Source: Podarcis melisellensis
Taxonomy: Eukaryota
Assembly (NCBI GenBank): GCA_964234715.1
Contig: OZ174290.1
Strand: one strand, 5' to 3'
DNA length: 64,000 nucleotides
Positions within the stretch are counted from its first letter, which is position 1; each line of letters starts with the position of its first letter. Position numbers and translations under genes: made by a program. The notes under the pieces are model-generated. The model had not been told where the DNA came from, made no database searches, and worked only from the letters and a program-made list of their open reading frames with translations. This document shows, one piece after another, positions 1 through 52,676 of the stretch.

Positions 1-536
1 GGCAAGTTGCTAAATATCAGAAAAAGACACCCATCTATATTGAAGATCCTGAACAAGATCTGCAGTACTTTAGGCTCTGCTTACAGGAAGCACAATCCTC
101 TGGAAAGTTTGCCTGCACAGCCTGCTCTGGGATCAATGGGAGATGTGCAAGAGCACAGCCATGCTAATTTTTTAAAAAGAAAATCCTAGCTTTCAGCATT
201 TACAAATTCTTGAAAACATAGCTGCATGCAGTGAAATACAACCATAGATTCATTTTGCTAAATTCTGGGGGGCCAACTGGTCAAATTTAATATTCTAATG
301 GTATCTCTCAGTTAGTAAGACTTCTAGGGTATCTCAAGATTAAGCTAGTTATGGCTTCAATCCCATGGACGCTACTGGAGAGTCAGCCCTATTGAATATA
401 GTGGCACTTCCAAGGAAACATGCACAGGAATAGCATGTAAAGGCAATGCCATTTGAGCAATGAAGAAGCTGTTAGGGCTTGAGAATTTAAAATGTGCCGT
501 TCAGATTTCCCCACTTGGAAAAGAAAAGGAACTTGC

Positions 537-612
537 CATTCAGACTTCCGGTGGTAGATACAGCACTGCTCTGTTTCTGGTTATCATACGCAGGGCCAAT
601 ATTAGCAAGATC
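537..612 (-). CDS. ASH2L: ASH2L exon 8 ([25 protein letters not shown]), ending at a GC donor
   Basis: Matches ASH2L; tttag| acceptor; donor AATG|GCAAGT; 76 nt. Confidence 0.9.
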
Positions 613-1287
613 CTAAAGAAGGAAAAATCAAATACACACCATTAAAAGTTACACGCCTTGCGCTGTTTGGATCAAATCTCACTGCTCAAGATCTGAGCAT
701 TTTGAAGATAAAGCAGGTCTTTTACAGCACAATTCCACCAAGCGTGTTGACTCTGAAGGAAATCCCACTGTATTCAATGGGGTTATTCCCAGGTTAAGTA
801 TGTTTAGGACTGATGCTGTGCCAGGTAAATAGCAACAATACAAATTTCTGTCCGACAAAGGGCCTCATCTCCCAACGTGTCCAAGATCCTGTTGTTCAAT
901 AGCTCATGAAAGCAACCTGCTCAAAAGCTTTGACAAATAATAATTCAGCAATATTTTGAAGTAACTGAGATAGCAATCATCACTATCCTGAAACTGCAGA
1001 GCTGAAGGGAGGACAATGCTGACGTTTGTCACCAGTCAGAAGCCTAGGGCCACTGAGAGGCTGCCTCTCAAGAATATCATCATGGCAAAGGGGGGGGGGG
1101 AGCAACCTGGCCGTATCTCTCAACCAAGGAAAGGCACAGCTGCTCTAACACTCACTTTCTTCTTCCCTCCCCAACCATTTTTCCTTGCATCTTTTTTCAG
1201 TTGGATTATCACTCTGTGCGCAGGAACTATTTTTTGAGCACTTAAAAAATCTTAGGCTACAGCATGCCCGCAACCTGAGCACATTTA

Positions 1288-1614
<327 letters not shown>

Positions 1615-1909
1615 CTAAAGCAGAACATTCAAACAAAATCATGTGCTAATGGCATAGTGAAAAGTACCTGGGATGTTATGTAGTGGGGGTTTTTCTGCCA
1701 TAAAGACAAGCGCTTATGGAGGCTGAGATAAAATAGAGGCTGACTGAGGATTTTATTTTAAAAAATTAAAGGGGACAGTAATGTAACAGGTATATTTTCA
1801 AAGCAATGATTTTTTTTTAAAAAATCAGCTTCTTAACCAAGCTTTAATAAAAAGAAATTTGCAATTTTGCTATGTCCCACTTCATACATATGTTTGAAGT
1901 ACGCTTCCG

Positions 1910-2582
1910 AGCACAATTCAAAGTGTTGGTGCTGACATTTAAAGCCTAAACTGTCTCGGCCGAGTATACCTGAAGGAGCATCTCCACCCCCGTCATTCAG
2001 CCCTGACACTGAGGTCCTGTTCCGAGGGCCTTCTTGCAGTTCCCACACTGCGAGAAGTGAGGTTACAGGGAACCAGGCAGAGGGCCTTTTCGGTAGTGGC
2101 GCCCGCCCTGTGGAACGCCATCCCATCAGATGTCCAGGAAATAAACAACTATCCGACTTTTAGAAGACATCTGAAGGCAGCCCTGTTTAGGGAAGTTTTT
2201 AATGTTTGGTGTTTTATCATGTTTTTAATCTTCTGTTGGGAGCAGGGCCGTAGCTAGGGCGTGGTGAGGTGGACCCCACCAGGGGCGCAGGCAATGGGGG
2301 GTCGTGCAAAATCGGCTAAAAATATGTCCATAAATATAAATATTGATTATTGCCTCATAAGAAATTGTTTTAAATAGACGGTGAATTGAATGGGTGGAGC
2401 AGGGGGTTGGAGGAGAGGCGGAAAGAAGAGCTAATTTGTCCATGGCTTGGAGGTGCAATCTGGACAGTTCTGCCAGGGGTGCAAAATCACCTAGCTACGG
2501 CTCTGGTTGGGAGCCGCCCAGAGTTGCAGGAGAAACCCAGCCAGATGGGTGGGATATTAATTATCATCATCATCATCATCAT
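1910..2582 (+). mobile_element. L2-type LINE 3' fragment, interrupted by a MITE
   Basis: Encodes RAFSVVAPALWN...FRRHLKAALF (L2 ORF2 C-terminus); (ATC)n tail; the same family recurs at about 12980, 21828 and 45184. Confidence 0.75.
2243..2505. mobile_element. hAT-type MITE (Tip100-like termini)
   Basis: 16-bp TIRs CAGGGCCGTAGCTAGG / CCTAGCTACGGCTCTG; 8-bp TSD GTTGGGAG at 2235-2242 and 2506-2513. Confidence 0.8.
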
Positions 2583-2589
2583 GACTCAC

Positions 2590-2685
2590 CATTGTTTTTA
2601 CAATATTATTTGGCCAAGTCATCTTCCCTGGTCTTTGTCGTGTCGTCATACACTCCCAATACTTATCAATGAATGGTATAATATC
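2590..2685 (-). CDS. ASH2L: ASH2L exon 6 ([32 protein letters not shown])
   Basis: Matches ASH2L; cag| acceptor and |GTGAGT donor; 96 nt. Confidence 0.96.
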
Positions 2686-3212
2686 CTGTTTGAAATCAAA
2701 GGCAAAAAAGGCAGAGTATTTTATTAAACAGATAAAATGGGGCTTTGGGGAGAAACTTGGTCATCTATACAAGTGGTTCCCAATCAGCTAAGTACTGCGG
2801 ACCCCGTTTTTCAGAAGTCAAGCCATGGACCTCCTACTTTGGAAAATTCTGATATCTCTATGGTAGTTTTTGTTATGTGACTGGTGCCACAGACCCCCTG
2901 GGTGGGTTACACAGACCACCAATTGGGAATCACCAATCTACATGATTATCTACTTATTTCTAGCATTTAAGCTACTGGACAAAATACAGGCAAAGATTAA
3001 AGAACATGAACTAAATTCACCAAGGCACAGTTCCATGAAAACCTACTGCAGTGTGCGTAACTTGCAGGGTATAATCTGTGTTTTCCAACGCAAAAAGCAC
3101 ATTACTGATGAAGGCAGAGTTAAGAACCAAGGCCTTTGACAGTTTCCACAAACTAAAATAATGGAGATAATTTGAGGCTCTCTGTGAGGATAGCAAACGT
3201 ACATACCAAATA

Positions 3213-3453
3213 CAGTGGAATCTCGGTTTTCAAACATCTTGGCTGCCAAAAGTTTCAGAAGCCGAACGCCGAAAACCTGGAAGTGAATGCTTCCTTTTTC
3301 GAACATGCCTTGGAAATCAAACGGCTTCTGAGGCACGTTTCTCATCCCCCCCCATTTAATTTGCCAACAGCCCTTTGATCCTTGGTTTTCGAACATTTTG
3401 GAGGTCAAATGGTCTTCCGGAATGGATAACGTTCAAAAACCGAGGTTCCACTG
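3213..3453. mobile_element. Tc1/mariner (pogo/Tigger-like) MITE
   Basis: TIRs CAGTGGAATCTCGGTTTT / AAAACCGAGGTTCCACTG; flanking TA. Confidence 0.75.
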
Positions 3454-3602
3454 TACAAGGATACGGTTTAGTTTTCACCTGTTTTGAACTGTACCATTTC
3501 ATATGGAAGATAAGGGGTTGCATAACTGTCCTCCACAGGCAAAAATTCCCTCTGGAGGAAACCTGGTATCTGCGAGATGAGTTCTAACTTAGCTGTCCCC
3601 TA

Positions 3603-3848
<246 letters not shown>

Positions 3849-4386
3849 TCAGGTGATGAAAAGGCTTTTGGTGAATCGGGAAGGATGTAGAGAGCTGGTG
3901 AAATAGTTTGACAGGAAAGGAGCAATCGGGTGGGCTACACAACTTATAGCTCTGGGCGATGTAGAATTACTTCCAAATGCAGCAACTACAATGCCGGGTC
4001 AGATGAGAAATGCTTCAAGCTCTCTTTGCTTTTGGCAATTAGCTCGATGTCTCCCAGAATGTCACACAAAACTCACAATGGAAGATTCGAAATTGTTCAA
4101 AATGGCATAAAGGCCGGACATAAGGGCCATGGCTCATTTGGCTCTTCCCGTGAACAATTTTTATATAAAATCAACAAGGAGAGATAAGGTAACCAAAACA
4201 CTCAATATTTAAGTGAAATCAGAGTTTCTAGTGGCACAGCTTTAGAAGAATTTGGAAACTTATTTTATCTGGTCCCAAATGAAAGCATGAGACATTTTAG
4301 AATCTGCTGCATTTGGTAGAGACTTCAAGATAGCATATTAGAATTCGGTTATCAGCAGCTTTTGGCAACATGCTCTTGGATTCATA

Positions 4387-5722
4387 TCATAGAATCATAG
4401 AGTTGGAAAAGACCACAAGGGCCATCGAGTCCAACCCCTGCCAAGCAGGAAACACCATCAGAGCACTCCTGACATATGGTTGTCAAGCCTCTGCTTAAAG
4501 ACCTCCAAAGAAGGAGACTCCACCACACTCCTTGGCAGCAAATTCCACTGTCGAACAGCTCTTACTGTCAGAAGCTCTTACTTCTTCCTAATGTTTAGGT
4601 GGAATCTTCTTTCTTGTAGTTTGGATCCATTGCTCCGTGTCCGCTTCTCTGGAGCAGCAGAAAACAACCTTTCTCCCTCCTCTATGTGACATCCTTTTAT
4701 ATATTTGAACATGGCTATCATATCACCCCTTAACCTCCTCTTCTCCAGGCTAAACATGCCCAGCTCCCTTAGCCGTTCCTCATAAGGCATCGTTTCCAGG
4801 CCTTTGACCATTTTGGTTGCCCTCCTCTGGACACGTTCCAGTTTGTCAGTATCCTTCTTGAACTGTGGTGCCCAGAACTGGACACAGTACTCCAGGTGAG
4901 GTCTGACCAGAGCAGAATACAGTGGCACTATTACTTCCCTTGATCTAGATCAGTGTTTCCCAAACGTTTTTGGGCAACGGCACACCTGTTTACTGAAAAA
5001 AAATCTCGCGGCACACCACCATTAAAGCCCCGCCCCGTGACGTCAGCGCGCAGCGTCACGCCGGGAGGGACGCACAAAAGTGAAAGCTTTTTCCCTCCCC
5101 CTTGCTGGGGAACCTCCAAGCTTTGGGGGTGGGAGGAGGCAGCAGAGCGAGGGACTGAGGGACGGCGGCAACTGAGGCGGCGGCGGCTGAGGCAGAGCTG
5201 GGAAGGGGGTTTCCAGGGGACACGGCAGCTCCTCGAAAGGCTTCTCTCAGCTGCGCTAAATCCGCCTCGGAGAGGATTTCCCCTCCGGTCCCATGCGTTC
5301 GTTTGGGGCATCGCTCCGGCTGCTCCCTCTCCCGCCGCGCAGGAGCGATGCCTCTCTCTGGCTCTCCCTCCGCGCAGGCTGAGGGAGGGAGGGAGGGGCG
5401 CGTGTGACCCGTCTCTGCTGGGAGACCAAACCCAGCGAGGCAGAGTCGCGCGGAGGCGCCCAGGCAGCGCTGCCGGCTGCGAGGAGGAGCGCCAGGCAGC
5501 AGCAGGAGGCGCGGCCTCTCCTCGCCGCCGCCGCCCCGCCTCTCGCCGCCCGACTCGCCCGCCTCCCTCCAGGCATCTCGCGGCACACGAGGCAACGTCT
5601 CACGGCACACTCGTGTGCCGCGGAACACCGGTTGGGAAACACTGATCTAGATGCTATACTCCTATTGATGCAGCCCAGAATTGCATTGGCTTTTTTAGCT
5701 GCCGCGTCACACTGTTGGCTCA
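4387..5722 (-). mobile_element. CR1 LINE 3' fragment, split by a hAT insertion
   Basis: [23 protein letters not shown]...[11 protein letters not shown] and SQQCDAAAKKANAILGCI (CR1 ORF2); (ATTCTATG)-type tail. Confidence 0.9.
4951..5644. mobile_element. GC/CpG-rich non-autonomous hAT (Charlie/Buster-type) element
   Basis: TIR CAGTGTTTCCCAA at both ends; perfect 8-bp TSD ATCTAGAT at 4943-4950 and 5645-5652; subterminal CGGCACAC repeats. Confidence 0.88.
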
Positions 5723-5942
5723 TAAAACCTTTCATCCCGGTTAACTGAAATCATCTCTAGCCAAGGATTTTTGAGATTCAACAGGTTAGCATTCTGCCAT
5801 GAAAGAGGATATTCTCACAGTTATATTTAAGACTGTCATATACATAATGAGAAAAGGAGAAATCATGATTTAGCATGTTTATATGCGTGCTAGGGATGGC
5901 AGCTACCCTAGATAATCCCACATTTTGAAGGTTATAGATTTA

Positions 5943-6128
<186 letters not shown>

Positions 6129-8796
6129 TTAAAATAAGTAATGAGTACTGGCTTGTGACAGAAGAATAAAATCCCCATCAATTTTATAGAATTAGAGCTA
6201 ACAATACTAAAGAATTTAAGATGAAAAACTACCTTAAAGCCTCCCCACCCTATTTTTAACCACTCTTGATGTTCGGGTTCTAGAGTGAGTTTGAAGTGTC
6301 TAGAGAGGCAGAACTAAGAAACAAAATATATCAAAATTTCACACAACTTTTCCACAAAGACACTGAGATATAGCCTAATCTGTGCATAATGCTCTTCAAA
6401 TTATGACCCATATTCAACTTCTTCCCATTTTAGCCAAGTAATCCCACCCCCAGATTCTTCTAAAAACAGCAACTAAGGAAGCCATCACTAAAGGTGAATA
6501 GGCTGACTGCCCCCACCCCAACCTCCTTGTAGGTCAAACACTGATCTACAATCTACTTAAGATACTGTACCTGCATTTAAATATTTCAGATATTGGGGAA
6601 AGGCAGTAGCTCAGTGACAGGCTCTGCTTCACGTGAGGAAGACCCCGGTTTCAGTCCCCGGTAACTCCTGACATAGCCCCAAACTAAAACCCTGGAGTGT
6701 TGCTACCCAGTATAGTCCATACTAAGCAAGTGGGCTAGCGGTATAAACGCAGTTTCCTGTGTTCCAGGTCTAAGCAAGTGCCAAGTCTCAATGCAGCAAA
6801 GAATTCCCACCTCAACCCCACAAGAGAGACTGTACCTTGGGGGTTGCTATCTTGCAACACAGCCTGTAGGCTGGCTCACTTGCTTGAGCCACCTGAAGCC
6901 CCTGCTTGGTTAACATCACTTGTTGTGCATGAAAGTTGCTGCATTGCAGTGCAAAGTTGGAAAAGAATGGCTTCAAATGATGGAGTTGGAAGATACTAAC
7001 TTTGTGGGACCAATCTTTCCATTTCAGATCAAGTGAGCCGAGTAGATGGCCTACAAATCACAGCTTTAAGACCAGTTCATTAAAATTCACATAGCTACAA
7101 AAATATTTTTCAAGCCCCACTTTGTTTACTGACTCCATGGAATGTTGCAATTCAGCTCAACCTCTTTGGATCCTTTTATTTAGAATGAGCCAGCAAAATA
7201 GCCTTTGCTCGCTCAGTTTAAGCCAAGGTTGTCAGCATTTCAGGGAAATACCAGCAAGCAAATAGAAGTTCAACTTTCCATGGAATAAAAAAAAAAAAAG
7301 TAAACATCCAGGACTGTAATTCATAAACAGTATACTCAGGATAACTGAAATAGATGGGTTTTCTCAAATTAAGTAGGTTAAGGACCGCAGCTCCACAGCG
7401 TTGTGTTTGGCACACTTTGTTTTATTATCACTTCACGGTTCAATGTGTGCTCAATGCTACACAAACACAGAGAAGCAAGGTCATTGCCACAGTTCATTAT
7501 GCAGCAAGTTCATTAGGCAGCAGAATATTACTTAAAGAAATCATAAAACTAATGCCTATTTTACCCAGCAGTCCTACAAAACGTTTGCCACTTCACAAAT
7601 CACGCGCCAGCCAAGATGAAACCGAGGTTTTAGCTTAAGGTTAAATTAATAGAAAATTTATAAATGAGAGGATATTGTGTATTTCTTTCACAAGCTGAGA
7701 GCTGGAAGAATTCTTGGTCAAGCCTGCAGTTTAACCACTTGATATTAATGTTCAGCATGGACATCAAAAAAATGACATGCAGAACTCAACAAAACAGAAT
7801 CAAAGTTTTGCCTAAGAGATTATTATTTCTGTGTAGAAAATCAATTGCTACTGTGTTGCTGTTTCCTCCTTTTATTTTTTAAAGTGGAAAAATCATTTAT
7901 CATATATTAGTCTTTTGGTGTTTACGTTGAGAATACCTTGCTGCACACGTACACACAAAAAAGCTATAAAGGCATATGGCTAAAAAGCAAAAGAGAGATT
8001 CAGAAACAGAATTTCTAAAGTCAGCATAACTCAGTGCATGGCTACTTAGGAGAAGGCGTCAGCATTTTCAGTGGAGCTTTCTCGCAGGTATAGGACTGAA
8101 GCCAATGAGCAGTATTCCATGCAGTACTATAATTGTTCCAAGATGGCGGCGCATTCAAACGCTGCGGCTCTGAACTCCCAATACTTCACCTACTCACGCA
8201 CAAAACTGGTACTAAGAGAGTTGAGTGGGGGGTGCTCGTGTAATCTCACTGTATACAGGTTGTACAAGTGACAATGAAGTATTTCAATAATGAACATTCC
8301 ATCTGCACAAGCATTGCAGCTTGCCAGACAAAACAATATCCCCTCTCCCCCCCCCATGCACTGTTCTGGGGGAGCTGCCCCAGAGCCAATTTGGGGGGGC
8401 ATGAGAGCCACGGGGAAGCCCTATGATGCAAGCGGGCGTCCTCACACAAGACCTGTTAGGTGAATCCTGCCCAATGCCTTAGGTAGCATTTTTCTGCATG
8501 GCTAGCAGTTTTATAAGCACGGCTTTGAGAGAAAAAACTAACACTGTGCTGTCATAGAAAATTAAAGCCCCAGCGAATTCAGTGGTGCTGACTTCCAAGT
8601 AAATACATCTAGAAAACGATTAGGTAGCTGAGCTCATACTGCCCTCTTCTGGAATGACAAAACTTTTCATACAGAAATTGACAGAACATTTAGAAAGTTC
8701 TTTAAGATGTGTCTATTAGGAGGACCAAACTAGAATCAGAGTACAAACGGGAATCACATGGCTCAAAAAGGAGGAAAAACTGCAAATACTACATAC

Positions 8797-8942
8797 GTGG
8801 TATCAATGCCAAAAGTTTCTGCCGTAAACCATTTGGTGCAAATTCCACACTGCAGCTCAATTTCTCCCAGCTGTCGTCCATTCTCTTCATCTACTGAGCC
8901 GGTCTGATTATCCATAACTTCAGAACTGTCGCCAACACCCTC
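8797..8942 (-). CDS. ASH2L: ASH2L exon 3 ([48 protein letters not shown])
   Basis: Near-identical to the start of the ASH2L PHD region; AG/GT boundaries; 146 nt. Confidence 0.96.
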
Positions 8943-9829
8943 CTGTAACAACATCAGTGCAAGTGTACCAAAGGAAGAGCTAAGAACAACATCTATTAAG
9001 CTTCTATCCCACCCTTCCTCCAGGGAACTTGAAGTGATACACACAGTTCTTCCCCTGCTTTATAGCCTCACAACAACCCTATGAGGCAGGTTAGGCTGAG
9101 AGATCCAAACTTATTTCATGAACTGTATGGCTGCAATTTCTACAGTCTTGGTCCAACACTAATGGACACATTTCAATGCTTTTTGCTAGGCTAGTTTTGC
9201 CAGAATTGAAGACACAAGTTATGACATTCATCTCATTTAAAAACAATTGCAACAAGTGTGGGCTTTTTTAAACATTAGTTTTCCATGATACAGAAAGAGA
9301 TCACTTCTAAATCTTGGTACAATAAGCTTCCTTTTCCAAACTTTCAGAACCCTCTAAAAGCTGCTGTTTTATGTATTAATTTGATCGTTTAAATTCTGGT
9401 TTTTAACAACTTTGTAACTGTAAAAATTAATTGTAAGTCAACTAGACACTGCCCTGTGTTAAGATGCAATTATTTAATTTTCTAGTCACGTAAGTGTATA
9501 AATTGGATGGAAAACAAACAAACATAAAAAACACTATATAGTGATGTAAGAGAAGAAAAGTTTGTGGGTAAACTTTGATCACACCAGTCCTACACAGGCT
9601 CAGGAATTCACTTTGTCTAGGTTTGCATTAGCATGCCACATTGAAATAATTTTCCACTTTGGGATAGGAATACATGGATCCACTTTAGCCCACTATCCAG
9701 GAGCAGTAAAAGACAAAGATGTTGCACTTCATAGACAGGTGGCCAAATTTTACCTTAGGGTGCTGTTTTCAGAGTTAACAAACAGTTATTGGCAGATGGT
9801 TTTAAAAAACCAGTACAAAGCATGTTAAA

Positions 9830-10677
9830 AGCATCCTTGATGCCTCCCTTTCCATGGAGGCGCAAGTTACAGCAACAGCCAAGGCGACATTTTTCCACCT
9901 TCGCCGCATCAAGCAGTTGGTCCCTTAGCTTTCCCGCCCCGACCTGGCCACAGTGATCCATGCGACGGTCATCTCCAGGCTTGACTACTGTAATTCGCTC
10001 TATGCGGGGCTGCCCTTGAAGCTGTCCCAGAAACTCCAGCGGGTACAGAATGCTGCAGCGAGGCTCCTCACGGGGTCTCTGCCATGGGAGCATATTCACC
10101 CAGTGCTTTTCAAGCTGCACTGGCTCCCGGTGGAGTACAGGGTCAGATTTAAGGTGCTGCTTTTGACCTTTAAAGCCCTTCACGGCCTAGGACCCTCGTA
10201 CCTACGGGACCGCCTCTCCTGGTATGCCCCACGGAGAGCCTCAAGGTCCATAAATAACAACACCCTAGTGGTCCCAGGCCCTAAGGAAGTTAGATTGGCT
10301 TCAACCAGAGCCAGGGCCTTTTCAATTCTGGCTCCGGCCTGGTGGAACACTCTGCCTCATGAGACCAGGGTCCTGCAGGATCTGATTTCTTTCCGCAGGG
10401 CCTGGAAGACAGAGTTCTTCCGCCTGGCCTTTGGCTTGGAGCCAATTTGATTCCCTCCCTCCCTCTCTCTTTTTTCCCCCCTTTCTTTTCCTTCTCCTCC
10501 TGCGATGAGGCTACATTTTAATATTTTAATGTTCCATTATTTTAATGTTGTATTTTTTTTGTTTTTAAGTTGTAACCATTCATCTTGTTTTTATTATTGC
10601 TTGTAAGCTGCTCTGAGCCCAGCCTTGGCTGGGGAGGGCGGGGTATAAATAAAAAATTATTATTATTATTATTACTA
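9830..10677 (+). mobile_element. L2-type LINE, 5'-truncated
   Basis: ORF 9953-10450 (IHATVISRLDYCNSLYAGLP...LQRVQNAAARLL...LHWLPV) is typical L2 ORF2 C-terminus; (ATT)n tail. Confidence 0.88.
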
Positions 10678-11230
10678 CAGAAAGCGTTAGTTCGAAGAAA
10701 CCCCACCATGAACAGTGCATAATTAATCTGATTCATCTGTCCAGTGGTAAGCACTGTGGAATCTCAAACCCTCCCCCCACCCCAGTATGCTATTATCCTT
10801 CTGGTTAAAAGGCAATCTGCCAATAAGTCAAAATTCTCACCTTTAAAACCTTCTCATCTTCTCCCATTCCTTTATAATAGCCATGTTGTCCCTTTGCAAC
10901 ACAACTCATCAGCAATCCCTAAGTAGCCTAAGCAGTGCATGAGATTTGAGCAATGAATATTTTGCTTTACTTTTGGAGAGCTGAAGAACATGCCTTCCCT
11001 TCCTTCACCAACTACAAAATAGTCTGGCAACAAACATGATGACGACTGGCACTTTAATCATGCCAGAGGCTCCTTTAACAGGCTTTGTGGATGCATTACT
11101 GCTCTGTGGCGCCCAATATGACATCCAGGGACTGAAAGACTACTTCCAAATCCCCAAACGGTTCATTCACAGGGCACATAGCTCTCCCCATGCATGTGGT
11201 ATCCCAGCAGAGTAGACTCAATTCACGTAC

Positions 11231-11300
11231 CAGTGCATCCTTCCCACTGGAAGATTCCGTCTCCATGGTGGCGGTGACATCGGCCAGGGATGCATCCCCC
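11231..11300 (-). CDS. ASH2L: ASH2L exon 2 (GDASLADVTATMETESSSGKDAL)
   Basis: ttcag| acceptor and |GTACGT donor; resembles human ...[21 protein letters not shown]; 70 nt keeps frame. Confidence 0.9.
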
Positions 11301-11590
11301 CTGAAGGAGACAGAAAGTCATCATCATGTTTTGTACACTTTTTAGGCATTATAGAATCACAGAGTTGTAAAGGACCTGGAGGGTTATCAGTCCAAGCCCC
11401 TGCAATGCAGGAATCTCAACTAAAGCATCCATAACAGGAAGCCACCCAACCTCTGCTTTAAAACCTCCAAGGAAGGTTGATATGCAGGACAGCTATGAAA
11501 AAGAATATACATTTAAAAAGCAAGGCACACACTAAAACCACTCTACTGTCCATTCAGCCATTCTGCATCATTCAAAACTGTGTAGTTAAT

Positions 11591-11834
11591 CCATGGGTAG
11601 GGAAACTAAGGCCCAGGAGCCGGAGCCGGCCCAATCGCCTTCTAAATCCAGCCTGCGGACGGTAGGGGAATCAGCGCGTTTTTTACATGAGTAGAATGTG
11701 TGCTTTTATTTAAAATGCATCTGAGTTATTTGTGGGGCATAGGAATTCATTCATTCACCCCCCCCCCCAAATATAGTCCAGAACCCCCACAAGTTCTAGG
11801 CAACAGCCCCCTGCTGAAAAAGTTTGCTGACCCT
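11591..11834. mobile_element. hAT-type MITE (family also at 38743 and 48111)
   Basis: Shares sequence (cccaatcgccttct...tttacatgagta...tttatttaaaatgca) with the other two copies. Confidence 0.7.
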
Positions 11835-12979
11835 ATCTGACCTCTATTGTTAACCAGAGATTAACCCTGACCTGACAAGGTCCACAAAGTGAAAAGGAGA
11901 CCTAAATGTAGAAGTGTGCCTTCATTCCTAGAACAGAAAGCTTCTTCAATGAAGTTTAAAAGAAAAGGAAAAGCTTGAGCTATCTCAAGTTTCTCTGTCA
12001 TCAGGATCCTTCTCATACTCAGTAGTGAGATGCTTGTCCAGAGAGCACATTGAGATAGGAGTCTCACTCAGCTCTAGTACCTTGGTACAGTTTACTTGGC
12101 TGCCTCCTGAGCAAGTAAGCATACACAGGGGCCAGGATAGGAAAAAGGAAACTGCCTTATACCATGTCAAACTATTTGTCCATCTGACCCAGCACTGCCC
12201 ACCACGACTGGCAGAAGCTCGCTGCTAGAGTGTTAGGTGGAGGTCTTTCCCATCACCTATCAACTGAATTAGAGCCTGAACCTGGGACCTTCAGCATGCA
12301 AAACATGTGCTCTTCCACTGAAAAAAACCCTGCAAATCTGTTGTTCTTGCTTCTGATCTAGGAAGGGAAATTGCACTCACAAGCTTCCTTTTACACACAC
12401 ATACTTGCTGGATCAGGTATGCACAACAGCATTATGTTTATGCCATGTCTTTCTATCACGGCATTCAAGGCAGCATATATGTAGTGGAGAAAACAGACTG
12501 CCATGCAGGGATGGCTGCTCCACTTGAAATGCTGCACCCTCCTGCACTAGGAGCCTTCAGGACAGAGCTCCTAATGGAAGAGGGTTTCTGATCTTCTGCA
12601 TTTAGGCATACACGTTTTTTTGGGGGGGGGGAGAGACTGCTCACTGGGTGGGGGAAAAAAGGGAAGTATTTACCTGGGGTTAAAAAATGTTGGTGAAGGT
12701 GTCAGGTGGACTTCACTGGATAAAGCATTCCACACACAGGGAGCCACAACTAAGAAGGCCCCCTGATTTGTCAACATCCTCCAAGCCTCCCTTACTAATT
12801 TTTATTAGTGTTACTCTACTACCGCTTAATTTTCTACAAACTGCTTTAAGCGCAAAAGTATCTGTGGAAAATGTGAAATAATCTGGCTTACTATATGGTT
12901 CCTCACCCTGATTTTATTCTTACAACCCTGTGAGTTAGGCAACACAAGAGATAGTTATGCGACCCCCGAGCGGTCGCCA

Positions 12980-13310
12980 TCCATCGTTCTGCCCAGATGC
13001 TGAGGTCCAGCGCCAAGGGCCTTCTGGTAGTTCCCTCATTGCGAGAAGCAAAGCTACAGGGAACCAGGCAGAGGGCCTTTTCGGTAGTGGCACCCGCCCT
13101 GTGGAATGTCCTCCCATCAGATGTCAATAAGATAAACAACTACCTGACATTTAGAAGACATCTGAAGGCAGCCCTGTTCAGGGAAGTTTTTAATGTGTGA
13201 CATTTTAATGTATTTTTAATCTTTGTTGGAAGCCACCCAGAGTGGCTAGGGAAACCCAGCCAGATGGGCAGCGTACAAATAACAAATTATTATTTATTAT
13301 CATTATTATG
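12980..13310 (+). mobile_element. L2-type LINE 3' fragment
   Basis: RAFSVVAPALWNVLP...; same 3'UTR and tail as the 1910 copy. Confidence 0.75.
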
Positions 13311-13999
13311 ACCGACTCAATGTCCCCACCGAGCTCCACGGCCGAGTGAGAATTTGCAGCTGGGTAGCTCCTGCCCCACCCTGATGCTCCAGCCATTACA
13401 TCACACTTGATTATGCTCAGAAACAGGTGGCCTTAGACGGAATCAGAACACAGGCCCACTTAGCTAAGGTAACTTCTAACTCTACAATGAATGGCTCTGG
13501 CTTTTTCAGGTTTCTGTGGAAGGAACTTTCTCACCCATAGCTAGAGAGTAACTTTACTGTTAATTCTCTGAACAGGGCCAAGGAAATGGCAGGGTGAGCA
13601 CATGCCACACAGAGCAAGCTCATTTCCTGCTGCTCCAGAGGGCAGGACCCGAACCGACGGATTCAAATAGGAAATAAGGAGATTTCAACTCTAACTTTCT
13701 GACCGTAAGAGGTGCTCCAACAATGTGGAACCAACTCTCTTGGAGCGTGGCAGGCTCTCCTTCACTGGAGGATTTTAAGCAAGAGGCTGGGCGACCATCT
13801 GTCCTATATGCTTTCGTTGAATTGTTGAATTGCAGGAGGGCTGGACTTGATGACCCCTGGGGGGACCCTTCCGACCCTGCAATTCCATGGCTGAACTCTC
13901 TTGCTCAGGTACAGCCCCATTCCTAGGGCGGGGGGAGGCAGTGCAGAAAGCAGCATGAACACCGGCTGGGAAGCAGCAATGGGTTCTGGGTTCAAGAAC

Positions 14000-14570
14000 A
14001 GCGCCTGCGAGAAAAGCACAGGCAGAATCGCTGCAAGGTTGGGGCGGGCAGAAAGGCGGACGCAGCTGATTGGGCAGGACGGCACTGCTCTGACCAATGA
14101 GAGGCAGGCCCGAGAGCCCCGACCAATAGGAGCAGGCGGCGGGAGCCGAGGCTCCCTAGCCAATAGCAGCGGCGGTGCCCGCTTTTCTCCCTCAGCCGTT
14201 ACCGCCGGGCCTCACCCGGTCTCGGAGTCCCCCGTCCCCTGCTCCGCTGAGCCCGAGGCCTCCCCGGTCGTAGATTCCGGAGCCGCCGGAGGAGTAGCCT
14301 CTTCCTCTCCTCCCTCGTCCGGCGCTGGAGCCGCCGCTCCCGCCGCCGCCATCTTCCCGCTGGAAACAGGTTCTCGCGAGAACTCCTGCCTGAACTCTCG
14401 CGAGATACTCTCTCACGGTAGCGCTTCCTCCCTCCCCCCCTTTATATTAAAGGGGCAATGTCACTCTCGCTTTCTTAAACGGGCGATGCGATCCACTGCG
14501 GGCTTGCTGCGAAGTCTCTGGACTTGGCATGCCGCAGCAATTAAACTATAGCGAGGGGAGGGGCGGGAGG
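14000..14570 (-). promoter_or_regulatory. ASH2L CpG-island promoter with two TCTCGCGAGA elements and a YY1-type motif
   Basis: CpG-rich; TCTCGCGAGA at 14372-14381 and 14396-14405; CCGCCATCTT overlaps the start codon; four CCAAT boxes at 14069-14164. Confidence 0.8.
14216..14352 (-). CDS. ASH2L: ASH2L exon 1 (MAAAGAAAPAPDEGGEEEATPP...GDSETG)
   Basis: ATG in gggaagATGG context inside a CpG island; MAAAG start like vertebrate ASH2L; donor GG|GTGAG; 137 nt, phase 2 matches exon 2. Confidence 0.9.
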
Positions 14571-22021: not shown

Positions 22022-23799
22022 GCAAAGTGACAGGTTGCAATCCTGTCCACACTTACAGGGGAGCAAACCCCACTGAACATCAACTAGGCATTTAAAACAA
22101 GGGAGATACCTTCTTATTGAGAAGAACATTAAGGAAGGGGAGAAACAAAGAGCTGCCAGAGCTTCTGCTGTTATCTGCATATAGGCAAACCAGGAATGAC
22201 CACAGTCCTCACTGCCATCCCAGAGGGACCTTCTTAAGCTCCAGTGTGGTGTAGTAGTTAGAGTCCGAATCCTTACTTGGCCATGAAGTTCAGTAGGTGA
22301 ACTTGGGCCAGTCATTACCTGAGATTCCTGCATTGCAGGGGGTTGGACTAGATGACCCCTGGGATCTAAGATGATGTGATCAACTCTCAGCCTAACCCAC
22401 CTCACAATATTGTGAAACATGACAAAAGTTTGCATTATATGCTTTAAAAACAACAATAACTGGCTTTGGGAGCTACTTCAAGGAAGTATCTCATCCTGTG
22501 CTGAAGATTGTTTAACAGTAAGCAATAATTTGTCAAATTTAATACTAGTTTTCTAACCTCACATTGCTCTTTGGAGTACCACCCACAGCGTCTACATCAG
22601 GGTGACTAACCTGTGGCTCTCTCTAGATTCCAGCTCCCATCAGCCCCAGTCAACATGGCCAATAGCTGAGGGTGATGGGCAACCTCTGTTCCCATTCCTG
22701 TTCTAAATGAACTCCTGGTCAAGCTTCAAGGGTGGCTAACTCAGGATGAGGTTGCAGAGAAAGGAAGCCTTGCATTTCAGAACAAAGGCATATTTCTTTC
22801 TGCTTAAAAGTGTTGGCCTTAAGGAGTACACTATACACAGAAATGCATGTGATGGAGTTTTGGTGGTATGTTGCTGAGAAAAGCATCCTCAAAAACTTCT
22901 GTCCGTCTATTGCATTCTTCATAACATCCAAGCAGAAATATAGCATGGGGTGATGAATTTGCTGTTATTATATAATAGGTTATATATTATAACAGGTTAT
23001 TTTCCCCTCCTTTCAAAGGCAGTCATTCTGCTTCAGTTGTCACCAGTGATTTAAGAAATGCATTACCTGAAGAAATTACCCTTTGGAGGAGAATGTCAAA
23101 ATATACAGGTTTTCCCCTTGTACCTTTTTGCAGTGTATAGGAAGGAAAGGAAGTTAGTTGCTTTAACAGTGCGTACTGTACAGTACTCAACACTTACTGT
23201 CGCATAACAAATGTAACTGAGCTGCAGAAAAGACTTTACAACCTGAAAAAGGAAGCAATGGACGTACTTTTGTAAACCAAGAAAATCTTTAATAAAAAAT
23301 ATTTTTAAAACAACAACACTGCAAGCTGTCCTGAAATCATATAGAAAGGTGGAAGGAATAGAAACAAGTAATATTTTTTTTTGTTTATTTGTTTATTTAT
23401 TTGGCTTATTATTACCCTACCCTTTTCACCCTAAGGTCCCAGGGCAGATTGCAATGATTTAGAATACGACATTAAAGACAGTTTAAAAGAAATTACAGTC
23501 ACAAACTGGGAGGGGGGGGGTCCTAGAAACGTATGAAGATTTGTAGAGACAAACGCCTCATTTCACAAGCCCCCTCCCCCGATTAAAAACGATCAGAACT
23601 CATCCATTGCCACCCAGATCTCGGCTTTCTCAGCCAAGTGTCAAAGATGAAGGTATTAGAGAATCAGGATGCAAAGACTGAAGGAGGGGGTCGGATAAGG
23701 CGTTTGGGAAGGGGGGGATAACACCCGCCAGGGGGATCTGGCTATCTTCAAGCATCTGTGAAAAAGAATCACTTTGCTCACATTCCACGTTGAGGCTGA

Positions 23800-23990
23800 T
23801 GTCTAATGAGAGAGCGGTCATTAATTGCCTGTTTCTTTCCTCATTGGGGGGCGAGGGAGAAGGTGGGGGAGTTGCATGAGAATAGGGACCAGAGGAAAAA
23901 AGGCAAGAGAAAGTTTGACAGCTTGTTGACATCAAAGACTCGCAAGATTAGGCAGCCGCAGGTATAAAAGTGCTGAACTCGAAGAAGGAG
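23800..23990 (+). promoter_or_regulatory. Nodal core/proximal promoter (TATA box, TCF/LEF site)
   Basis: TATAAAAG at 23963-23970, about 350 nt before the ATG; ACATCAAAG at 23929-23937; TGACAG at 23916-23921; TAATTG homeodomain site near 23822. Confidence 0.65.
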
Positions 23991-24313
23991 AGAGGAGCAT
24001 TCGGAGCGAGCAGAAGCGGAGTAAGGGGCTTGAGCAGACGCCCCCTCCGGGGAGAGGGAGAAGAGGGAGCAAAAGAAAGAAGCAAGAAGACTTCTCATTT
24101 AGACGAGGGTGAAAAAGAGAGGGAGAATGGGAGCGAGACAATTCTGACCCGAGTCAACCCTCTTAAGTTCCCTGAATTCGGAGTCAATTCGGATCTGAGC
24201 ACAGGAGAGAGAGAGAGAGAAAACGGGGATTTAGGTGACACAAGATAGAAAACAGACTCTTAGGTTAGAAGTTGAGAGAGAGAGGGAAAGAGACTTCTGC
24301 AATCTATGCAGCG

Positions 24314-24623
24314 ATGCCTCCCAGGACCCCCTCGCTCTTGGAGCTGATGTCTTGGGCGCTCGCCCTCCTGGGCGCAGCCTGCTCGCAGACCGTCGAGCTG
24401 CTGCAGGAGGCCGCCGAGGGCCAGCTCCGGCCCGCCGCCTCCTCTCCGGCCGGCCTGGCCGCAGCCCCGGCCCGCCCTCGCCCGCAGCCCCCGGCGCTCC
24501 GCTCCCCGGTGTACATGCTGCAGCTGTACCGCGCCCTCGTCGTGGGCAGCCCCCCGAGCCAGCCCAGCGCAGAAGCCTCGGCCTGGAGAGAATCCGACAC
24601 CATCCTCAGCCTGGGGGCGCGAC
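24314..24623 (+). CDS. NODAL: Nodal exon 1 (signal peptide and prodomain start, ...PVYMLQLYRAL...ESDTILSLGAR)
   Basis: Hydrophobic leader WALALLGAAC; Nodal prodomain motifs YMLQLY and SDTILSL; donor C|GTAAGT, phase 1. The start could alternatively be Met12 at 24347. Confidence 0.9.
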
Positions 24624-24861
24624 GTAAGTCCTGCTCCTTGCCTCGGTTGACCCCTTTCCGTCCCCCCCCCCCCCCACCGCCACAAAAAGCCTCCCCTGGC
24701 CCCTTTCCATTTGGAGTTACTTCCATTCTGATTTCCTGCCCAGGGTTTGTAAGGACATCCTGGATGGATGGATGGATGGATAGATATCCGCATCCCTGGG
24801 TGGTGGTCCTTCTGGCCTTAAGTCAACCCGCCTCCCGCCTCTCCTTCCCGGGTCTCTTTTT

Positions 24862-24925
24862 TGTGGATTGTGGCCCCAGACGTCTGCAACGGAGAGAGCC
24901 CCCCAAGAGAGAGATGCAATCCACA
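24862..24925. promoter_or_regulatory. Nodal intron-1 FoxH1/Smad autoregulatory (ASE-like) enhancer core
   Basis: TGTGGATTG at 24862-24870 and CAATCCACA at 24917-24925 flank the palindrome CAGACGTCTG at 24877-24886. Confidence 0.75.
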
Positions 24926-26981
24926 TCCCCTTTCCCTTACTACTAAGGACATCTGGCAGGAACCAGATGGGAAAGTTGGGAGGGGGGGGAGAAGCGAGGC
25001 TGGGGGTGTCGCATGATGCGCAGGAAGGGTGCAGCTAGAGGTTGCCACGCTCCAGAAGCTGCCTTACACTCGGGGAGGAGCGAGGCACCTGGAAATGGCC
25101 AGCGGAGGAGAAAGCGGCGTCTCAACGTTCCCTGGAAGAGTATTGGGATATGCTATTGTCTGAGCTGCGTTCAAAGAAAAGGAAAACAGGTGGAGAGAGA
25201 GAGAGAGAGAGGGGTGGGGGGTGGGAGAACAGATTTCTGTGTACAGACTTGACTGTTCTCCCATTATGGCTGTGCGTGTTCTGTCTGATCCAGCTGCACA
25301 CTTTGCTGTGTCCGTGGATGGTTTTGAGGTTCAGGAACTCTAGAATACATTTGTACACCACGGCTGGTTTTTATTCTAGGGATTAGAAACGCCACTTATT
25401 TAAACTGTACCCAGGTAGGACCATAGGAAGCTGCCTTTTATCAGGTCAAACTAATTGTGCATTCAGCCCAATATCAACCCCCACCTCCCCCCTCAAACCC
25501 TGGAGCATGTTTGCAAATGATGTGCAACAGTCATGGCCTCTGCAGTGGTGAATTTGTCTTCCTTTTCTTGCTTTTCCATTTCAGCTTTTTGAGTTGGAAT
25601 ATAATTTTATACAGTCAATACCAACTGTTTCCCCTCAGTCTTTTGTTAGCACTTCAAAAGCAGAAAGGTATTTTTTTTTTAATGTCCTAATTAGTTATCA
25701 ACACTTTCAAAGAGGGGGCATCAAAGGGTCTATGGGTGTGAGGAGTACAATGAAATTTAATGAGCTACGTGCCTTTAGTCTTTGAACTTCCATAACCCAA
25801 TCAACCACTTAACTAGCTGATGCAATGAGTTAATAGCTGTCTTCAAGACAGCAGGGCCAGGGGAAGATAAAGTGGACAGCTGGAGCTTGTGCAGCTAATC
25901 TGGAAGTGATGTTGTTAGGGAGACGCATTAAGGAGAGTAAGGATTCTAATATACCCATATCTTAGAAATGGAGAATTATAATACATGCAGATGACTCTCA
26001 AGGTCCCTTCCAACTCTACAATTTTATTATTCTATATACCACTCTAGTTTTCAACAGCCATTCATATAAGCTGCCCTGTACAACAACCCTGTGAGGGAGG
26101 CCAGTATTTTCCCCAAAATGCAGATGGGGGGGGGAGGTTCCTGGGGAGGTGAGCTGAAGCAGATAGATGTGGCTTCATTAAGGCAAGGAAATTACTAATT
26201 CATGTCCCACTTTCTTTGCCACCATAAAAACCAGCTCCATGGTACCTGGCAGTAAAGGCTAGATTTTTCTTCAAAAAATTGAGTTCACTTAGCACCCATT
26301 GATATTAATGGAGTTCAGATAGTTTCCTGAGCATCTGAGCTTCATTTATGTGTCTGTTAATTTTCTACGGTCTTTCTTTCTCAACAAGAAAGTGAAGTAT
26401 TTTTTATTACTAATTTTTAGTCATTAGTACATTAATATCCTCCTTTCCCTCCAAGGAACTCAAGGTTTCATCACCCCATTATATCCTCACATCACCTGTG
26501 TGTGGTAGGTTAGGCTGAGAGATAGTAACTGGCCCAAAGTCACCCAGTGCACTTTCTGCCTGAGTGGCGATTTGAACTCTGGTATCCCAGATTGTAGTCT
26601 GACCCTAACTGCTACACCATGCTGGCTCATATCCTCTTCTTCTAGATATGTTCCTGGCTGCTCCTGAAAATCCCCTCTTCCCAGTTTGAGAACAGCTCAG
26701 TCACTGCTATGCTCTACAATATGCCAAGAATTACAGGTCCATTTCAAATTTACCATTGTAAGAACAAAGGTTATTTGATTTGTCTATCTAGCTTATTGTT
26801 ATCTACTTTGACTGGTAGCAGCTTTCCAGGGAGAGGATATTTTCAGATCACCTGCTGCATAATTCTTCTAACTGGAGATGCCAAGGAACTATATACCAAA
26901 ACACATGCTTAACCAATGTGCTATAGTCCCCCTCAGTTCTCTTGGATCCCTGTTTCTCACTTGTTTGTGCTGGTTTTTTCT

Positions 26982-26982
<1 letters not shown>

Positions 26983-27025
<43 letters not shown>
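26983..27025. repeat. (AAT)n microsatellite
   Basis: Direct reading. Confidence 0.9.
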
Positions 27026-27027
<2 letters not shown>

Positions 27028-27149
27028 AACCCCCCTTTTTTTAAAAAAAGAAAAAGCTGAAAGACTCCAGGGAAAAGTGAGTAGATTAGTGGCATGAGAG
27101 GTGCTAGCCAATCAGTACTACACACAGGCAACTTCAGCTGCAACAGGCA

Positions 27150-27150
<1 letters not shown>

Positions 27151-27196
<46 letters not shown>

Positions 27197-27370
27197 TTTA
27201 TTTATATCCCGCCCTCCCCAGCCGAAGCTGGGCTCAGGGCAGCTAACAACAATCAAAATAGTCCAACATTCTAAAAACATTCATTGTAAAATTAATTAAA
27301 ATCAAATTAAAATCAAATTAATGGCAACCATCAAGCAAAATTCTGTGCAGATTGCCAGAGGAGGGGGTCA
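27151..27370 (-). mobile_element. L2-type 3'UTR fragment with (AAT)n tail
   Basis: Reverse match to the 3' ends of the 9830 and 40393 elements. Confidence 0.65.
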
Positions 27371-27601
27371 GAAGTTCAGAGGAAATTTTTTGAGTGAAGA
27401 AAATGCAGTGGATGCTCTTGCACGGGGGCACAGTTCTATGCTGGCCTTCATAGATGCTGTTTTATTTTCCCACCCCATGTCCTCTTATCCTGCCTTCTCC
27501 CCAAGACTATTTTTGAGAGTCATAGAGTTAAGAGACTTTATTATTAAATGGTGTTCCTTTGTTCCATTCATCCCAACCAGTGCCATTCTTCTGCCTTCCA
27601 G

Positions 27602-28416
27602 ATTATTTCCAGTTTGAGGACCACTGGGACTTCTCTTTTGACTTGACCTCCATTTCCAGCAGCTCTGATGTGAGGCTGGCAGAGTTCCGGGTCTGCCTGA
27701 CGCCTTTCCCCCAGTACAGGAGTGTCACTTTGAACATCTACCACAGCCATGAGCGCACCTGCCATGGGAACCAGACCTGCACAGACAAGATCTTCCTTGG
27801 TTCTTTCATTAGCAGGAACTCCAGCCACTCCTCCTGGAAAGTCTTCAATGCCACCAGCATACTCCGCTTCTGGCTCCACCAGGGGGTATCATTTGGCATG
27901 GGTGCTCCTGATGATCAGGAGAGGCACTGGGTGGAGGAGAACCTATCTCAGGACAATGACGGAAGATCAGCTGATGGGTTCCAGGGAAAATGTGGGTGCA
28001 ATGACGATCAACAGGCCCATGTATTGAGCCATAGCATGACTGACAGAGTCCTACTGGTTATCTTCTCCAAAGATAAGGAACTGGTGGAGCCCTCTCAGGG
28101 CCCAAGTCTCATCAGGACGGTGGAGATGTCCAAGTACATCATGATGGACAACACTTTCAAGGAGACGGGGGGCCGTCGGCACCGGCGGAACAGGAAGCAG
28201 AAGCAAAGGATTAAAGCGGCTAATATTTCCACCGCCAACTTTGGCAAAGAAGGGAGATCTCTGTGCAGGAGGGTAGATATGATTGTGGACTTTGAGCAGA
28301 CTGGCTTCGGAAGTTGGATTGTGCACCCCAAGAAATACAATGCCTACCGGTGTGAGGGAGAGTGCCCGTTGCCTGTTGATGAAACCTTCAAGCCAACAAA
28401 TCATGCATATATTCAG
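27602..28416 (+). CDS. NODAL: Nodal exon 2 (prodomain, furin site RRHRR, mature domain to NHAYIQ)
   Basis: ccttccag| acceptor in phase 1; CRRVDMIVDF...WIVHPKKYNAYRCEGECP...PTNHAYIQ; donor CAG|GTTTGT. Confidence 0.97.
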
Positions 28417-30848: not shown

Positions 30849-31001
30849 AGCTTGCTGAAGTTATACCAACCCAACCGGGTGCCTTGCCCATCTTGTGCCC
30901 CTGTCAAAATGAGCCCTCTGTCTATGATGTACTACGAGAAAGGGAAAGTGAGGGTCCGTCACCATGACGACATGATCATCGAGGAATGTGGCTGCAACTG
31001 A
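30849..31001 (+). CDS. NODAL: Nodal exon 3 ([18 protein letters not shown]...MIIEECGCN*)
   Basis: Polypyrimidine tract and ttcag| acceptor; terminal CGC cystine-knot motif; TGA stop. Confidence 0.97.
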
Positions 31002-38202: not shown

Positions 38203-38742
38203 TACTCCCACAATAAAAAAATTGGCGATGATCTACCCACTGGATTGACCAAAGAATCAAAGTTGTTGAGCTTTTTTGGTCTAGCAACATCTGTGGCTGG
38301 ATAAAGGATGAACATTATAGGACCAATCAATTATAGAGCCCAGCTCTCAGTTTCTCCACCATGATCTGCGCTGGCCCCAAATTGGAAGGGGGGGTGTGGA
38401 TTAAAAGGAGCAAGCCTTGTGAGAAGGTAGGTGCTGTTTTGCCACTGCCTCCCCACAAATCCACCATGTTTTTCAAGGCTGATTAGCTCCAATCCACATC
38501 AGCCTTTGCAGATAAACAAAGCGTGTCTGGTTCTCACCCCTGAGGCCTGCATGTCAGCACAAAGGAGAGGGTAGCATTGCTGCATATTCAGACAGCAGTT
38601 TCACACTGTGAGCCTCTAGCAATTAAGGAGTGGCTAGAGGTTCATTTGCAAGAGCTGTTACCCAAAATGACTTCCTAGAAAGGAATGAACCCACTATTTC
38701 CCCCTCCTTCTCCCCCAAATCTAGGAATTGAATTGTCTATCT

Positions 38743-47134: not shown

Positions 47135-47279
47135 NNNNNNNNNNNNNNNNNNNNNNNNNNNNNNNNNNNNNNNNNNNNNNNNNNNNNNNNNNNNNNNNNN
47201 NNNNNNNNNNNNNNNNNNNNNNNNNNNNNNNNNNNNNNNNNNNNNNNNNNNNNNNNNNNNNNNNNNNNNNNNNNNNNNN
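47135..47279. other. Assembly gap (N run)
   Basis: 145 consecutive n characters. Confidence 0.99.
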
Positions 47280-52502: not shown

Positions 52503-52676
52503 CTAAGCCTGGTTGCTTCTCCTCCTCAGCGTGGATGAGATTGGTCTCGGTCCCAAGGATTTCGACAGCTGGGCTTGTAACACCTGGAATGTCTGGAAGG
52601 TCACAAGGTGGTGTTTTGGCAACTGGAGAATTCCGACACTCCATTAAAAATTTGCGGTCATATATAATGCGTGTAC
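52503..52676 (-). CDS. EIF4EBP1: EIF4EBP1 exon 2 ([24 protein letters not shown]...)
   Basis: eIF4E-binding motif YxxxxLphi; S65/T70-equivalent sites; ctag| acceptor and |GTGAGT donor. Confidence 0.96.

Follow-up and report, generated by a model that had tools for sequence, protein, structure and literature searches.

The window is the whole 64,000-nucleotide stretch of DNA that was analyzed, and it holds a three-exon Nodal gene on the plus strand with a neighbor on either side. Exon 1 (24314–24623, plus strand) runs from the ATG to a GTAAGT donor in phase 1, and its translation finds the orthologue exon 1 by tblastn. Intron 1 (24624–27601, plus strand) is 2,978 bp long, extends from the donor at 24624 to the acceptor AG at 27600–27601, and hosts the module described below. 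The reading frame is unbroken across the exon 1/exon 2 junction. Exon 2 (27602–28416, plus strand) encodes the end of the prodomain, the RHRR cleavage site, and the first half of the ligand domain, and Pfam identifies both TGFb_propeptide and TGF_beta in it. Exon 3 (30849–31001, plus strand) encodes the second half of the ligand domain, matches positions 57–104 of the Pfam TGF_beta profile, and ends with a TGA stop. The three exons were searched and scanned singly, unjoined. The best protein match to the exon 2 product is the Podarcis raffonei "nodal homolog" (96% identity), and the similarity ranking continues with squamate, turtle, crocodilian, and bird Nodal and the amphibian "nodal homolog 2-A". 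The window accordingly belongs to a lacertid near to, yet distinct from, P. raffonei. The ASH2L exons (526–14243, minus strand) are colinear with the ostrich ASH2L gene, and an eIF_4EBP exon identified by Pfam (EIF4EBP1; 52570–52677, minus strand) lies on the other side. A run of 145 N's occupies 47135–47279, between Nodal2 and EIF4EBP1. The ostrich annotation gives the identical gene order, ASH2L, Nodal, and 4E-BP. Judged by gene order and protein similarity, the host gene is Nodal2, the bird/reptile paralogue flanked by ASH2L and EIF4EBP1, with the name used in the sense of PMC10126504. The initial annotation had placed the module in "Nodal intron 1". This holds in that the host is a three-exon Nodal gene with TGF_beta domains, but the gene is the Nodal2 paralogue, and mouse Nodal is not its orthologue. 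In Rhineura floridana, another "nodal homolog 2-A-like" protein (P0003, 345 aa), which shares 79% identity with exon 2 of the window, lies on another large contig than P0002 and may be a lineage-specific Nodal2 duplicate.

The intronic module consists of short motifs in a fixed order. FoxH1-type site 1, TGTGGATTG, occupies 24862–24870 on the plus strand and is preceded by a conserved T run. Exon 1 ends at 24623 with the GTAAGT donor next, which places site 1 at 239 bp into intron 1. A perfect 10-bp Smad-box palindrome, CAGACGTCTG (24877–24886, strandless), starts 6 bp past site 1. It is followed by a semi-conserved stretch with the consensus CAAAGGAGGGAC (24887–24899, plus strand) and then by a variable C-rich spacer. 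FoxH1-type site 2 is inverted (24917–24927, minus strand) and reads CAATCCACATC on the plus strand. Within it, CAATCCACA (24917–24925) reverse-complements the 9-mer TGTGGATTG exactly, and the gap between the two 9-mers is 46 bp (24871–24916). A third conserved block, GGACATCTGGCAGG (24947–24960, plus strand), contains the E-box CATCTG at 24950–24955. The motifs, the reverse-complement pair, the 46-bp gap, and the palindrome had been described before and are all exact in the sequence, and the earlier figure of ~240 bp into intron 1 agrees with the 239 bp measured here. In contigs from run X4, which come from another sample of this organism, the module shows zero differences, and a related organism (X7) differs at 24857 and 24895 alone, both outside the sites.

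Orthologous loci from eleven species were compared. Intron 1 was scored in Podarcis, Rhineura, Varanus, Paroedura (gecko), Liasis (python), Elgaria, Hemicordylus (cordylid), and the turtle Mauremys. Sceloporus was left out of this scoring, its exon 1 and intron 1 start lying beyond 6 kb upstream of exon 2; iguanians are thus unscored for the intronic module because the Sceloporus locus came without the start of intron 1. Each of the seven other squamates, and Mauremys as well, has one TGTGGATT(+)/AATCCACA pair, located 103–647 bp into intron 1. The alignment of intron 1 across sauropsids that the initial annotation had proposed was run, and both sites are retained throughout this set. In alignment A1, TGTGGATTG, CGTCTG, and AATCCACATC are invariant in nine of nine species, and the intron flanks are unalignable. 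Eight of the nine species have 6 bp between site 1 and the Smad box and the python has 21 bp, whereas the two FoxH1 sites are offset from each other by 29 to 77 bp. The full palindrome is intact in six of nine species; its left half reads CCGAC in the gecko, CAGCC in the python, and GAGAC in the cordylid. Because the left half varies in these three species, the constrained unit is one GTCTG box with a second half that is usually intact. The palindrome had been described as two CAGAC boxes; both are present here, but only the CGTCTG half is invariant among the nine species. The stretch at 24887–24899 is similar in seven to eight of the nine and missing from the gecko in the same alignment. The base flanking site 2, a C, is G in the python and T in the cordylid. 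The third-block core GACATCTGG is identical in the lacertids, Rhineura, Elgaria, Hemicordylus, and the turtle. The block as a whole has slight 3′-end changes in Rhineura and Hemicordylus, reads CATGTG in Varanus, and is altered in the python and gecko.

Two comparisons made without reference to the motifs single out the same segment. A blastn comparison of the window from 14 to 42 kb with the turtle locus yields a single non-exonic match, the module. K-mer footprinting across the 2,978-bp intron gave four 9-mers common to all seven distant species, TGTGGATTG being one of them, and all come from the two FoxH1 sites. The sole 10-mer of the intron common to all seven is AATCCACATC.

The module has several of the features by which ASEs are recognized. 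An ASE is defined as two to three TGT(G/T)(T/G)ATT sites within 30–200 bp (PMC2885315). The two TGTGGATT sites here are perfect and have a start-to-start distance of 56 bp, the module lies in intron 1 of a Nodal gene, and CAGACGTCTG, a Smad-binding sequence predicted by motif, is located 6 bp from a FoxH1 site. The module also sits at the orthologous position in other species, the property that separates functional ASEs from the Ablim1 pairs. These data argue that the module acts in Nodal2 as an autoregulatory enhancer of ASE type that responds to Nodal through FoxH1/Smad, a reading to which we assign a probability of roughly 0.8. By analogy, the ~100-bp segment at 24858–24960 is probably the counterpart of the intron-1 ASE of mouse Nodal and Xenopus Xnr1. 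The initial annotation had read the module as the equivalent of the ASE and as a left-side enhancer. Its position, motif content, and deep conservation fit the first part of that reading, whereas we infer the left-sided activity, together with factor occupancy and signal dependence.

The predicted mechanism follows the ASEs of mouse and frog, in which FoxH1 on paired sites recruits phospho-Smad2/3–Smad4 upon Nodal signaling and establishes positive feedback (PMC4068991, PMC2885315). FoxH1 would bind the two inverted TGTGGATT sites of the lizard module. Nodal signaling would lead to Smad2/3 phosphorylation, and Smad2/3 together with Smad4 would be recruited by FoxH1. The Smad MH1 domains would touch the GTCT/AGAC box held at a fixed 6 bp from site 1. 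Nodal2 transcription would then increase, and the positive feedback would amplify and spread Nodal expression. The expected site of action is the left lateral plate mesoderm, and probably gastrulation too. The mouse ASE is active in the epiblast as well, which makes it probable that "left-side enhancer" captures just a part of what the element does.

The same conserved bases might be read mainly by other factors, in which case the enhancer would serve gastrulation or midline control and not left-side Nodal autoregulation. K50 homeodomain proteins (Pitx2, Otx2, Gsc) are candidates for GGATT, bHLH proteins (Hand, Twist) for CGTCTG/CATCTG, and ATF/CREB for ACGT. The GGATTG/CAATCC sequence is one base off the homeodomain site TAATCC, and the cordylid carries TAATCC itself. 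In the palindrome, CGTCTG is the half that does not vary, and a conserved CATCTGG block comes next at 24947–24960; both CGTCTG and CATCTG resemble degenerate E-boxes reported for Hand proteins. However, none of the eight FoxH1 consensus bases varies at either site in any of the nine species, and these include the TGT/ACA ends that a homeodomain does not need. The pair, the spacing range, and the intron-1 position agree with the ASE definition (PMC2885315), and the module agrees with the gecko and turtle ASE-like clusters in the text and Fig. 4 of PMC9634164. These proteins may act as co-factors, and additional factors would supplement the FoxH1/Smad reading rather than supplant it; we regard control mainly by these other proteins as unlikely.

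The abundance of the motifs was compared with chance expectation. The 9-mer TGTGGATTG matches three times in the window compared to 0.73 expected, a number equaled in 4 of 100 shuffles, so this count is weak by itself. It leaves room for the proposal that short motifs co-occur by chance in the GC-rich stretch just past exon 1 and have no regulatory role, as does the fact that the initial annotation sought FoxH1/Smad motifs exactly where they were expected. Random ASE-like pairs are estimated at one per 350 kb, and non-functional ones exist: the non-conserved pairs at Ablim1 are inactive in reporter assays (PMC2885315). The inactivity of the Ablim1 motif pairs makes conservation the test that matters. 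Here, the same motif order is kept in eight other species, from squamates to turtle, within an intron that is otherwise unalignable. Dinucleotide shuffles of the window place TGTGGATT(+) and then AATCCACA within 100 bp in 3 of 1000 cases (0.3%), and none of 1000 places a CAGAC/GTCTG box between the two sites. Chance co-occurrence is very improbable on these data.

The inverted 9-mers could also pair with each other, whether in single-stranded DNA or in the pre-mRNA, and the resulting stem could affect intron 1 splicing or transcription; the 9-mers are exactly reverse-complementary and the predicted fold pairs them, but the fold energy is ordinary (z = −0.61, with 45 of 200 shuffles folding equally well or better), compensatory changes are found in none of the species, the motifs are invariant rather than covarying, the ninth pair is lost in the python with no compensating change and is reduced to G-U in the cordylid, and the loop length ranges from 21 to 69 nt. 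An RNA hairpin was rejected on the fold energy and the lack of covariation and is exceedingly improbable. No Rfam family matched at 24000–26000. Origin from a repeat or transposon was rejected because the module has a copy number of one in the window.

The paired-site FoxH1/Smad module of Nodal2 is found in squamates and a turtle, and the archosaur loci differ in this intron. Intron 1 is ~215 bp in the alligator (L010 3169–3382) and ~730 bp in the ostrich (L012 10250–10980), compared to squamate introns of 2.7–5.3 kb and a turtle intron of 2.8 kb. The alligator and ostrich introns (one crocodilian and one bird) contain no FoxH1 site, even at one mismatch. The module is therefore dispensable for Nodal2 regulation in some sauropsids, and the lizard–bird comparison that had been suggested as informative proves to be so. 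A literature search on the remark that FoxH1 is hard to find in bird genomes returned no statement either way.

The 22-kb ASH2L–Nodal–4EBP interval of the ostrich contains one perfect FoxH1 site, and it lies inside a conserved element downstream of the gene. In the window, this element (38443–38697, plus strand) is located ~7.5 kb past the Nodal2 stop codon and has one conserved FoxH1 site at 38491–38498. It is common to lacertids, Sceloporus, alligator, and ostrich, as found by blastn and alignment A2, with matches at Podarcis L001 27440–27700, Sceloporus L008 13014–13263, alligator L010 7247–7370, and ostrich L012 15601–15769. Alignment A2 consists of the window, Podarcis, Sceloporus, and alligator; the ostrich was matched via blastn alone, and the turtle stands outside the comparison with only 3 kb of flank taken. 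The invariant blocks of A2 are AATCCACATC, CAGATAAACAAAGC, GTCTGGTTCT, CATATTCAGACAGCA, and TTTCACAC, the last a T-box-like half-site. The content of the element is a single FoxH1 site, Smad boxes, a forkhead/GATA-like block, and the T-box half-site. A neighboring TGTGGATT at 38395 is unconserved even in Podarcis. The downstream element is probably a second Nodal-responsive element. A tentative scenario, possible but at present doubtful, is that the paired-FoxH1 intron-1 enhancer was ancestral to sauropsids and was lost in archosaurs as intron 1 shrank, with crocodilian and bird Nodal2 feedback passing through the downstream element. If true, archosaur enhancer turnover would coincide with the way birds break symmetry, by cell movement and independently of cilia. 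The alligator/ostrich contrast, in which only the downstream FoxH1-bearing element is present, offers a handle on the rewiring of Nodal feedback in archosaurs.

Other conserved blocks surround Nodal2. A second squamate-wide block in intron 1 (25640–25830) is present in Rhineura, Varanus, Paroedura, Elgaria, and Hemicordylus, and no turtle counterpart was detected. Within the block, the stretches ACTTCAAAAG, CTTTCAAAG, ATCAAAGG, TTTGAA, and CCAATTAACCAATTAAC are invariant or almost so, and their TCF/LEF-type and homeodomain-type look suggests a Wnt-responsive element. Upstream of exon 1, the promoter-proximal segment at 23557–24038 gives blastn matches of 240–520 bp at 71–76% identity in Rhineura, Varanus, Liasis, and Elgaria; it probably represents the core promoter or else a proximal enhancer. 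A tandem TGTTTATT TGTTTATT at 23382–23397, ~0.9 kb upstream of the Nodal2 ATG, is embedded in T-rich sequence and corresponds to a general forkhead-type motif. Podarcis has a related motif in single copy at L001 9112.

Nodal self-activation via FoxH1 sites is the core of the spreading of "left" identity through the lateral plate. Lacertid Nodal2 retains the classic intronic module, which is nearly base-identical with that of snakes, geckos, anguimorphs, and turtle. The accepted picture of Nodal regulation is unaltered, and the module provides a precise 100-bp target for functional work in lizard models.

The module shares features with several characterized Nodal-responsive elements. The activin response elements of Mix.2 and goosecoid have a FoxH1 site adjoining Smad4 GTCT/AGAC sites. 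They resemble lizard site 1 and its box at 6 bp in being tight FoxH1–Smad composites, but they are promoter-proximal, belong to mesendoderm genes, and have one FoxH1 site, whereas the lizard module is intronic and paired. The Pitx2 ASE additionally requires an Nkx2 site, and the lizard module contains no clear conserved Nkx2 site. Like the lizard module, the Lefty2 and Pitx2 ASEs have paired FoxH1 sites, which make these genes direct Nodal targets in the left lateral plate, as described in PMC2885315 and PMC9634164. The genes and positions differ from those of the lizard module, the Lefty ASE being upstream of its gene and the Pitx2 ASE intronic. The FAST-regulated module within Xnr1 intron 1 (Osada et al. 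2000) reportedly gives activin/Nodal responsiveness and left-sided expression. It is an intron-1 FoxH1 (FAST) element like that of the lizard, and the two are likened by description. Osada et al. 2000 is the reference given for Xnr1 in a passage of PMC9178097.

The mouse Nodal ASE has two functional FoxH1–Smad2/3 motifs and is autoregulatory (PMC4068991). The work of Norris et al. 2002 and Saijoh et al. 2000 on this FoxH1-dependent element is taken as summarised in PMC4068991 and PMC2885315. The mouse and lizard elements both lie in Nodal intron 1 and have two FoxH1–Smad2/3 motifs in the 30–200 bp range. They differ in that the mouse gene is Nodal1, beside EIF4EBP2, and the lizard gene is Nodal2. 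Activity is proven for the mouse ASE, whereas we infer it for the lizard module, and the likeness is one of position and motifs.

ASE-like FoxH1 clusters have been described in reptiles. The text of PMC9634164 places them in Nodal intron 1 of the Madagascar ground gecko and of the Chinese softshell and other turtles, as in mouse, and cites Kajikawa et al. 2020 for them. The clusters in its Fig. 4 (gecko; Chinese softshell, green sea, and painted turtles) involve the same Nodal2, the same intron, and the same AATCCACA/TGTGGATT motifs. The gecko locus compared here, from Paroedura picta, carries the orthologous pair. A literature search for AATCCACA returned PMC9634164 as the sole relevant paper, the remainder being irrelevant primers. 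According to the text and the Fig. 4 legend, the published clusters are hand-mapped FoxH1 motifs, and the species added here is a lacertid. The fixed 6-bp FoxH1–Smad composite, the third block, and the absence of the module in a crocodilian and the ostrich are not stated in that text or legend. Because the intron-1 clusters of gecko, turtle, and mouse have already been described there, the lacertid element is a further case of the published ASE-like kind.
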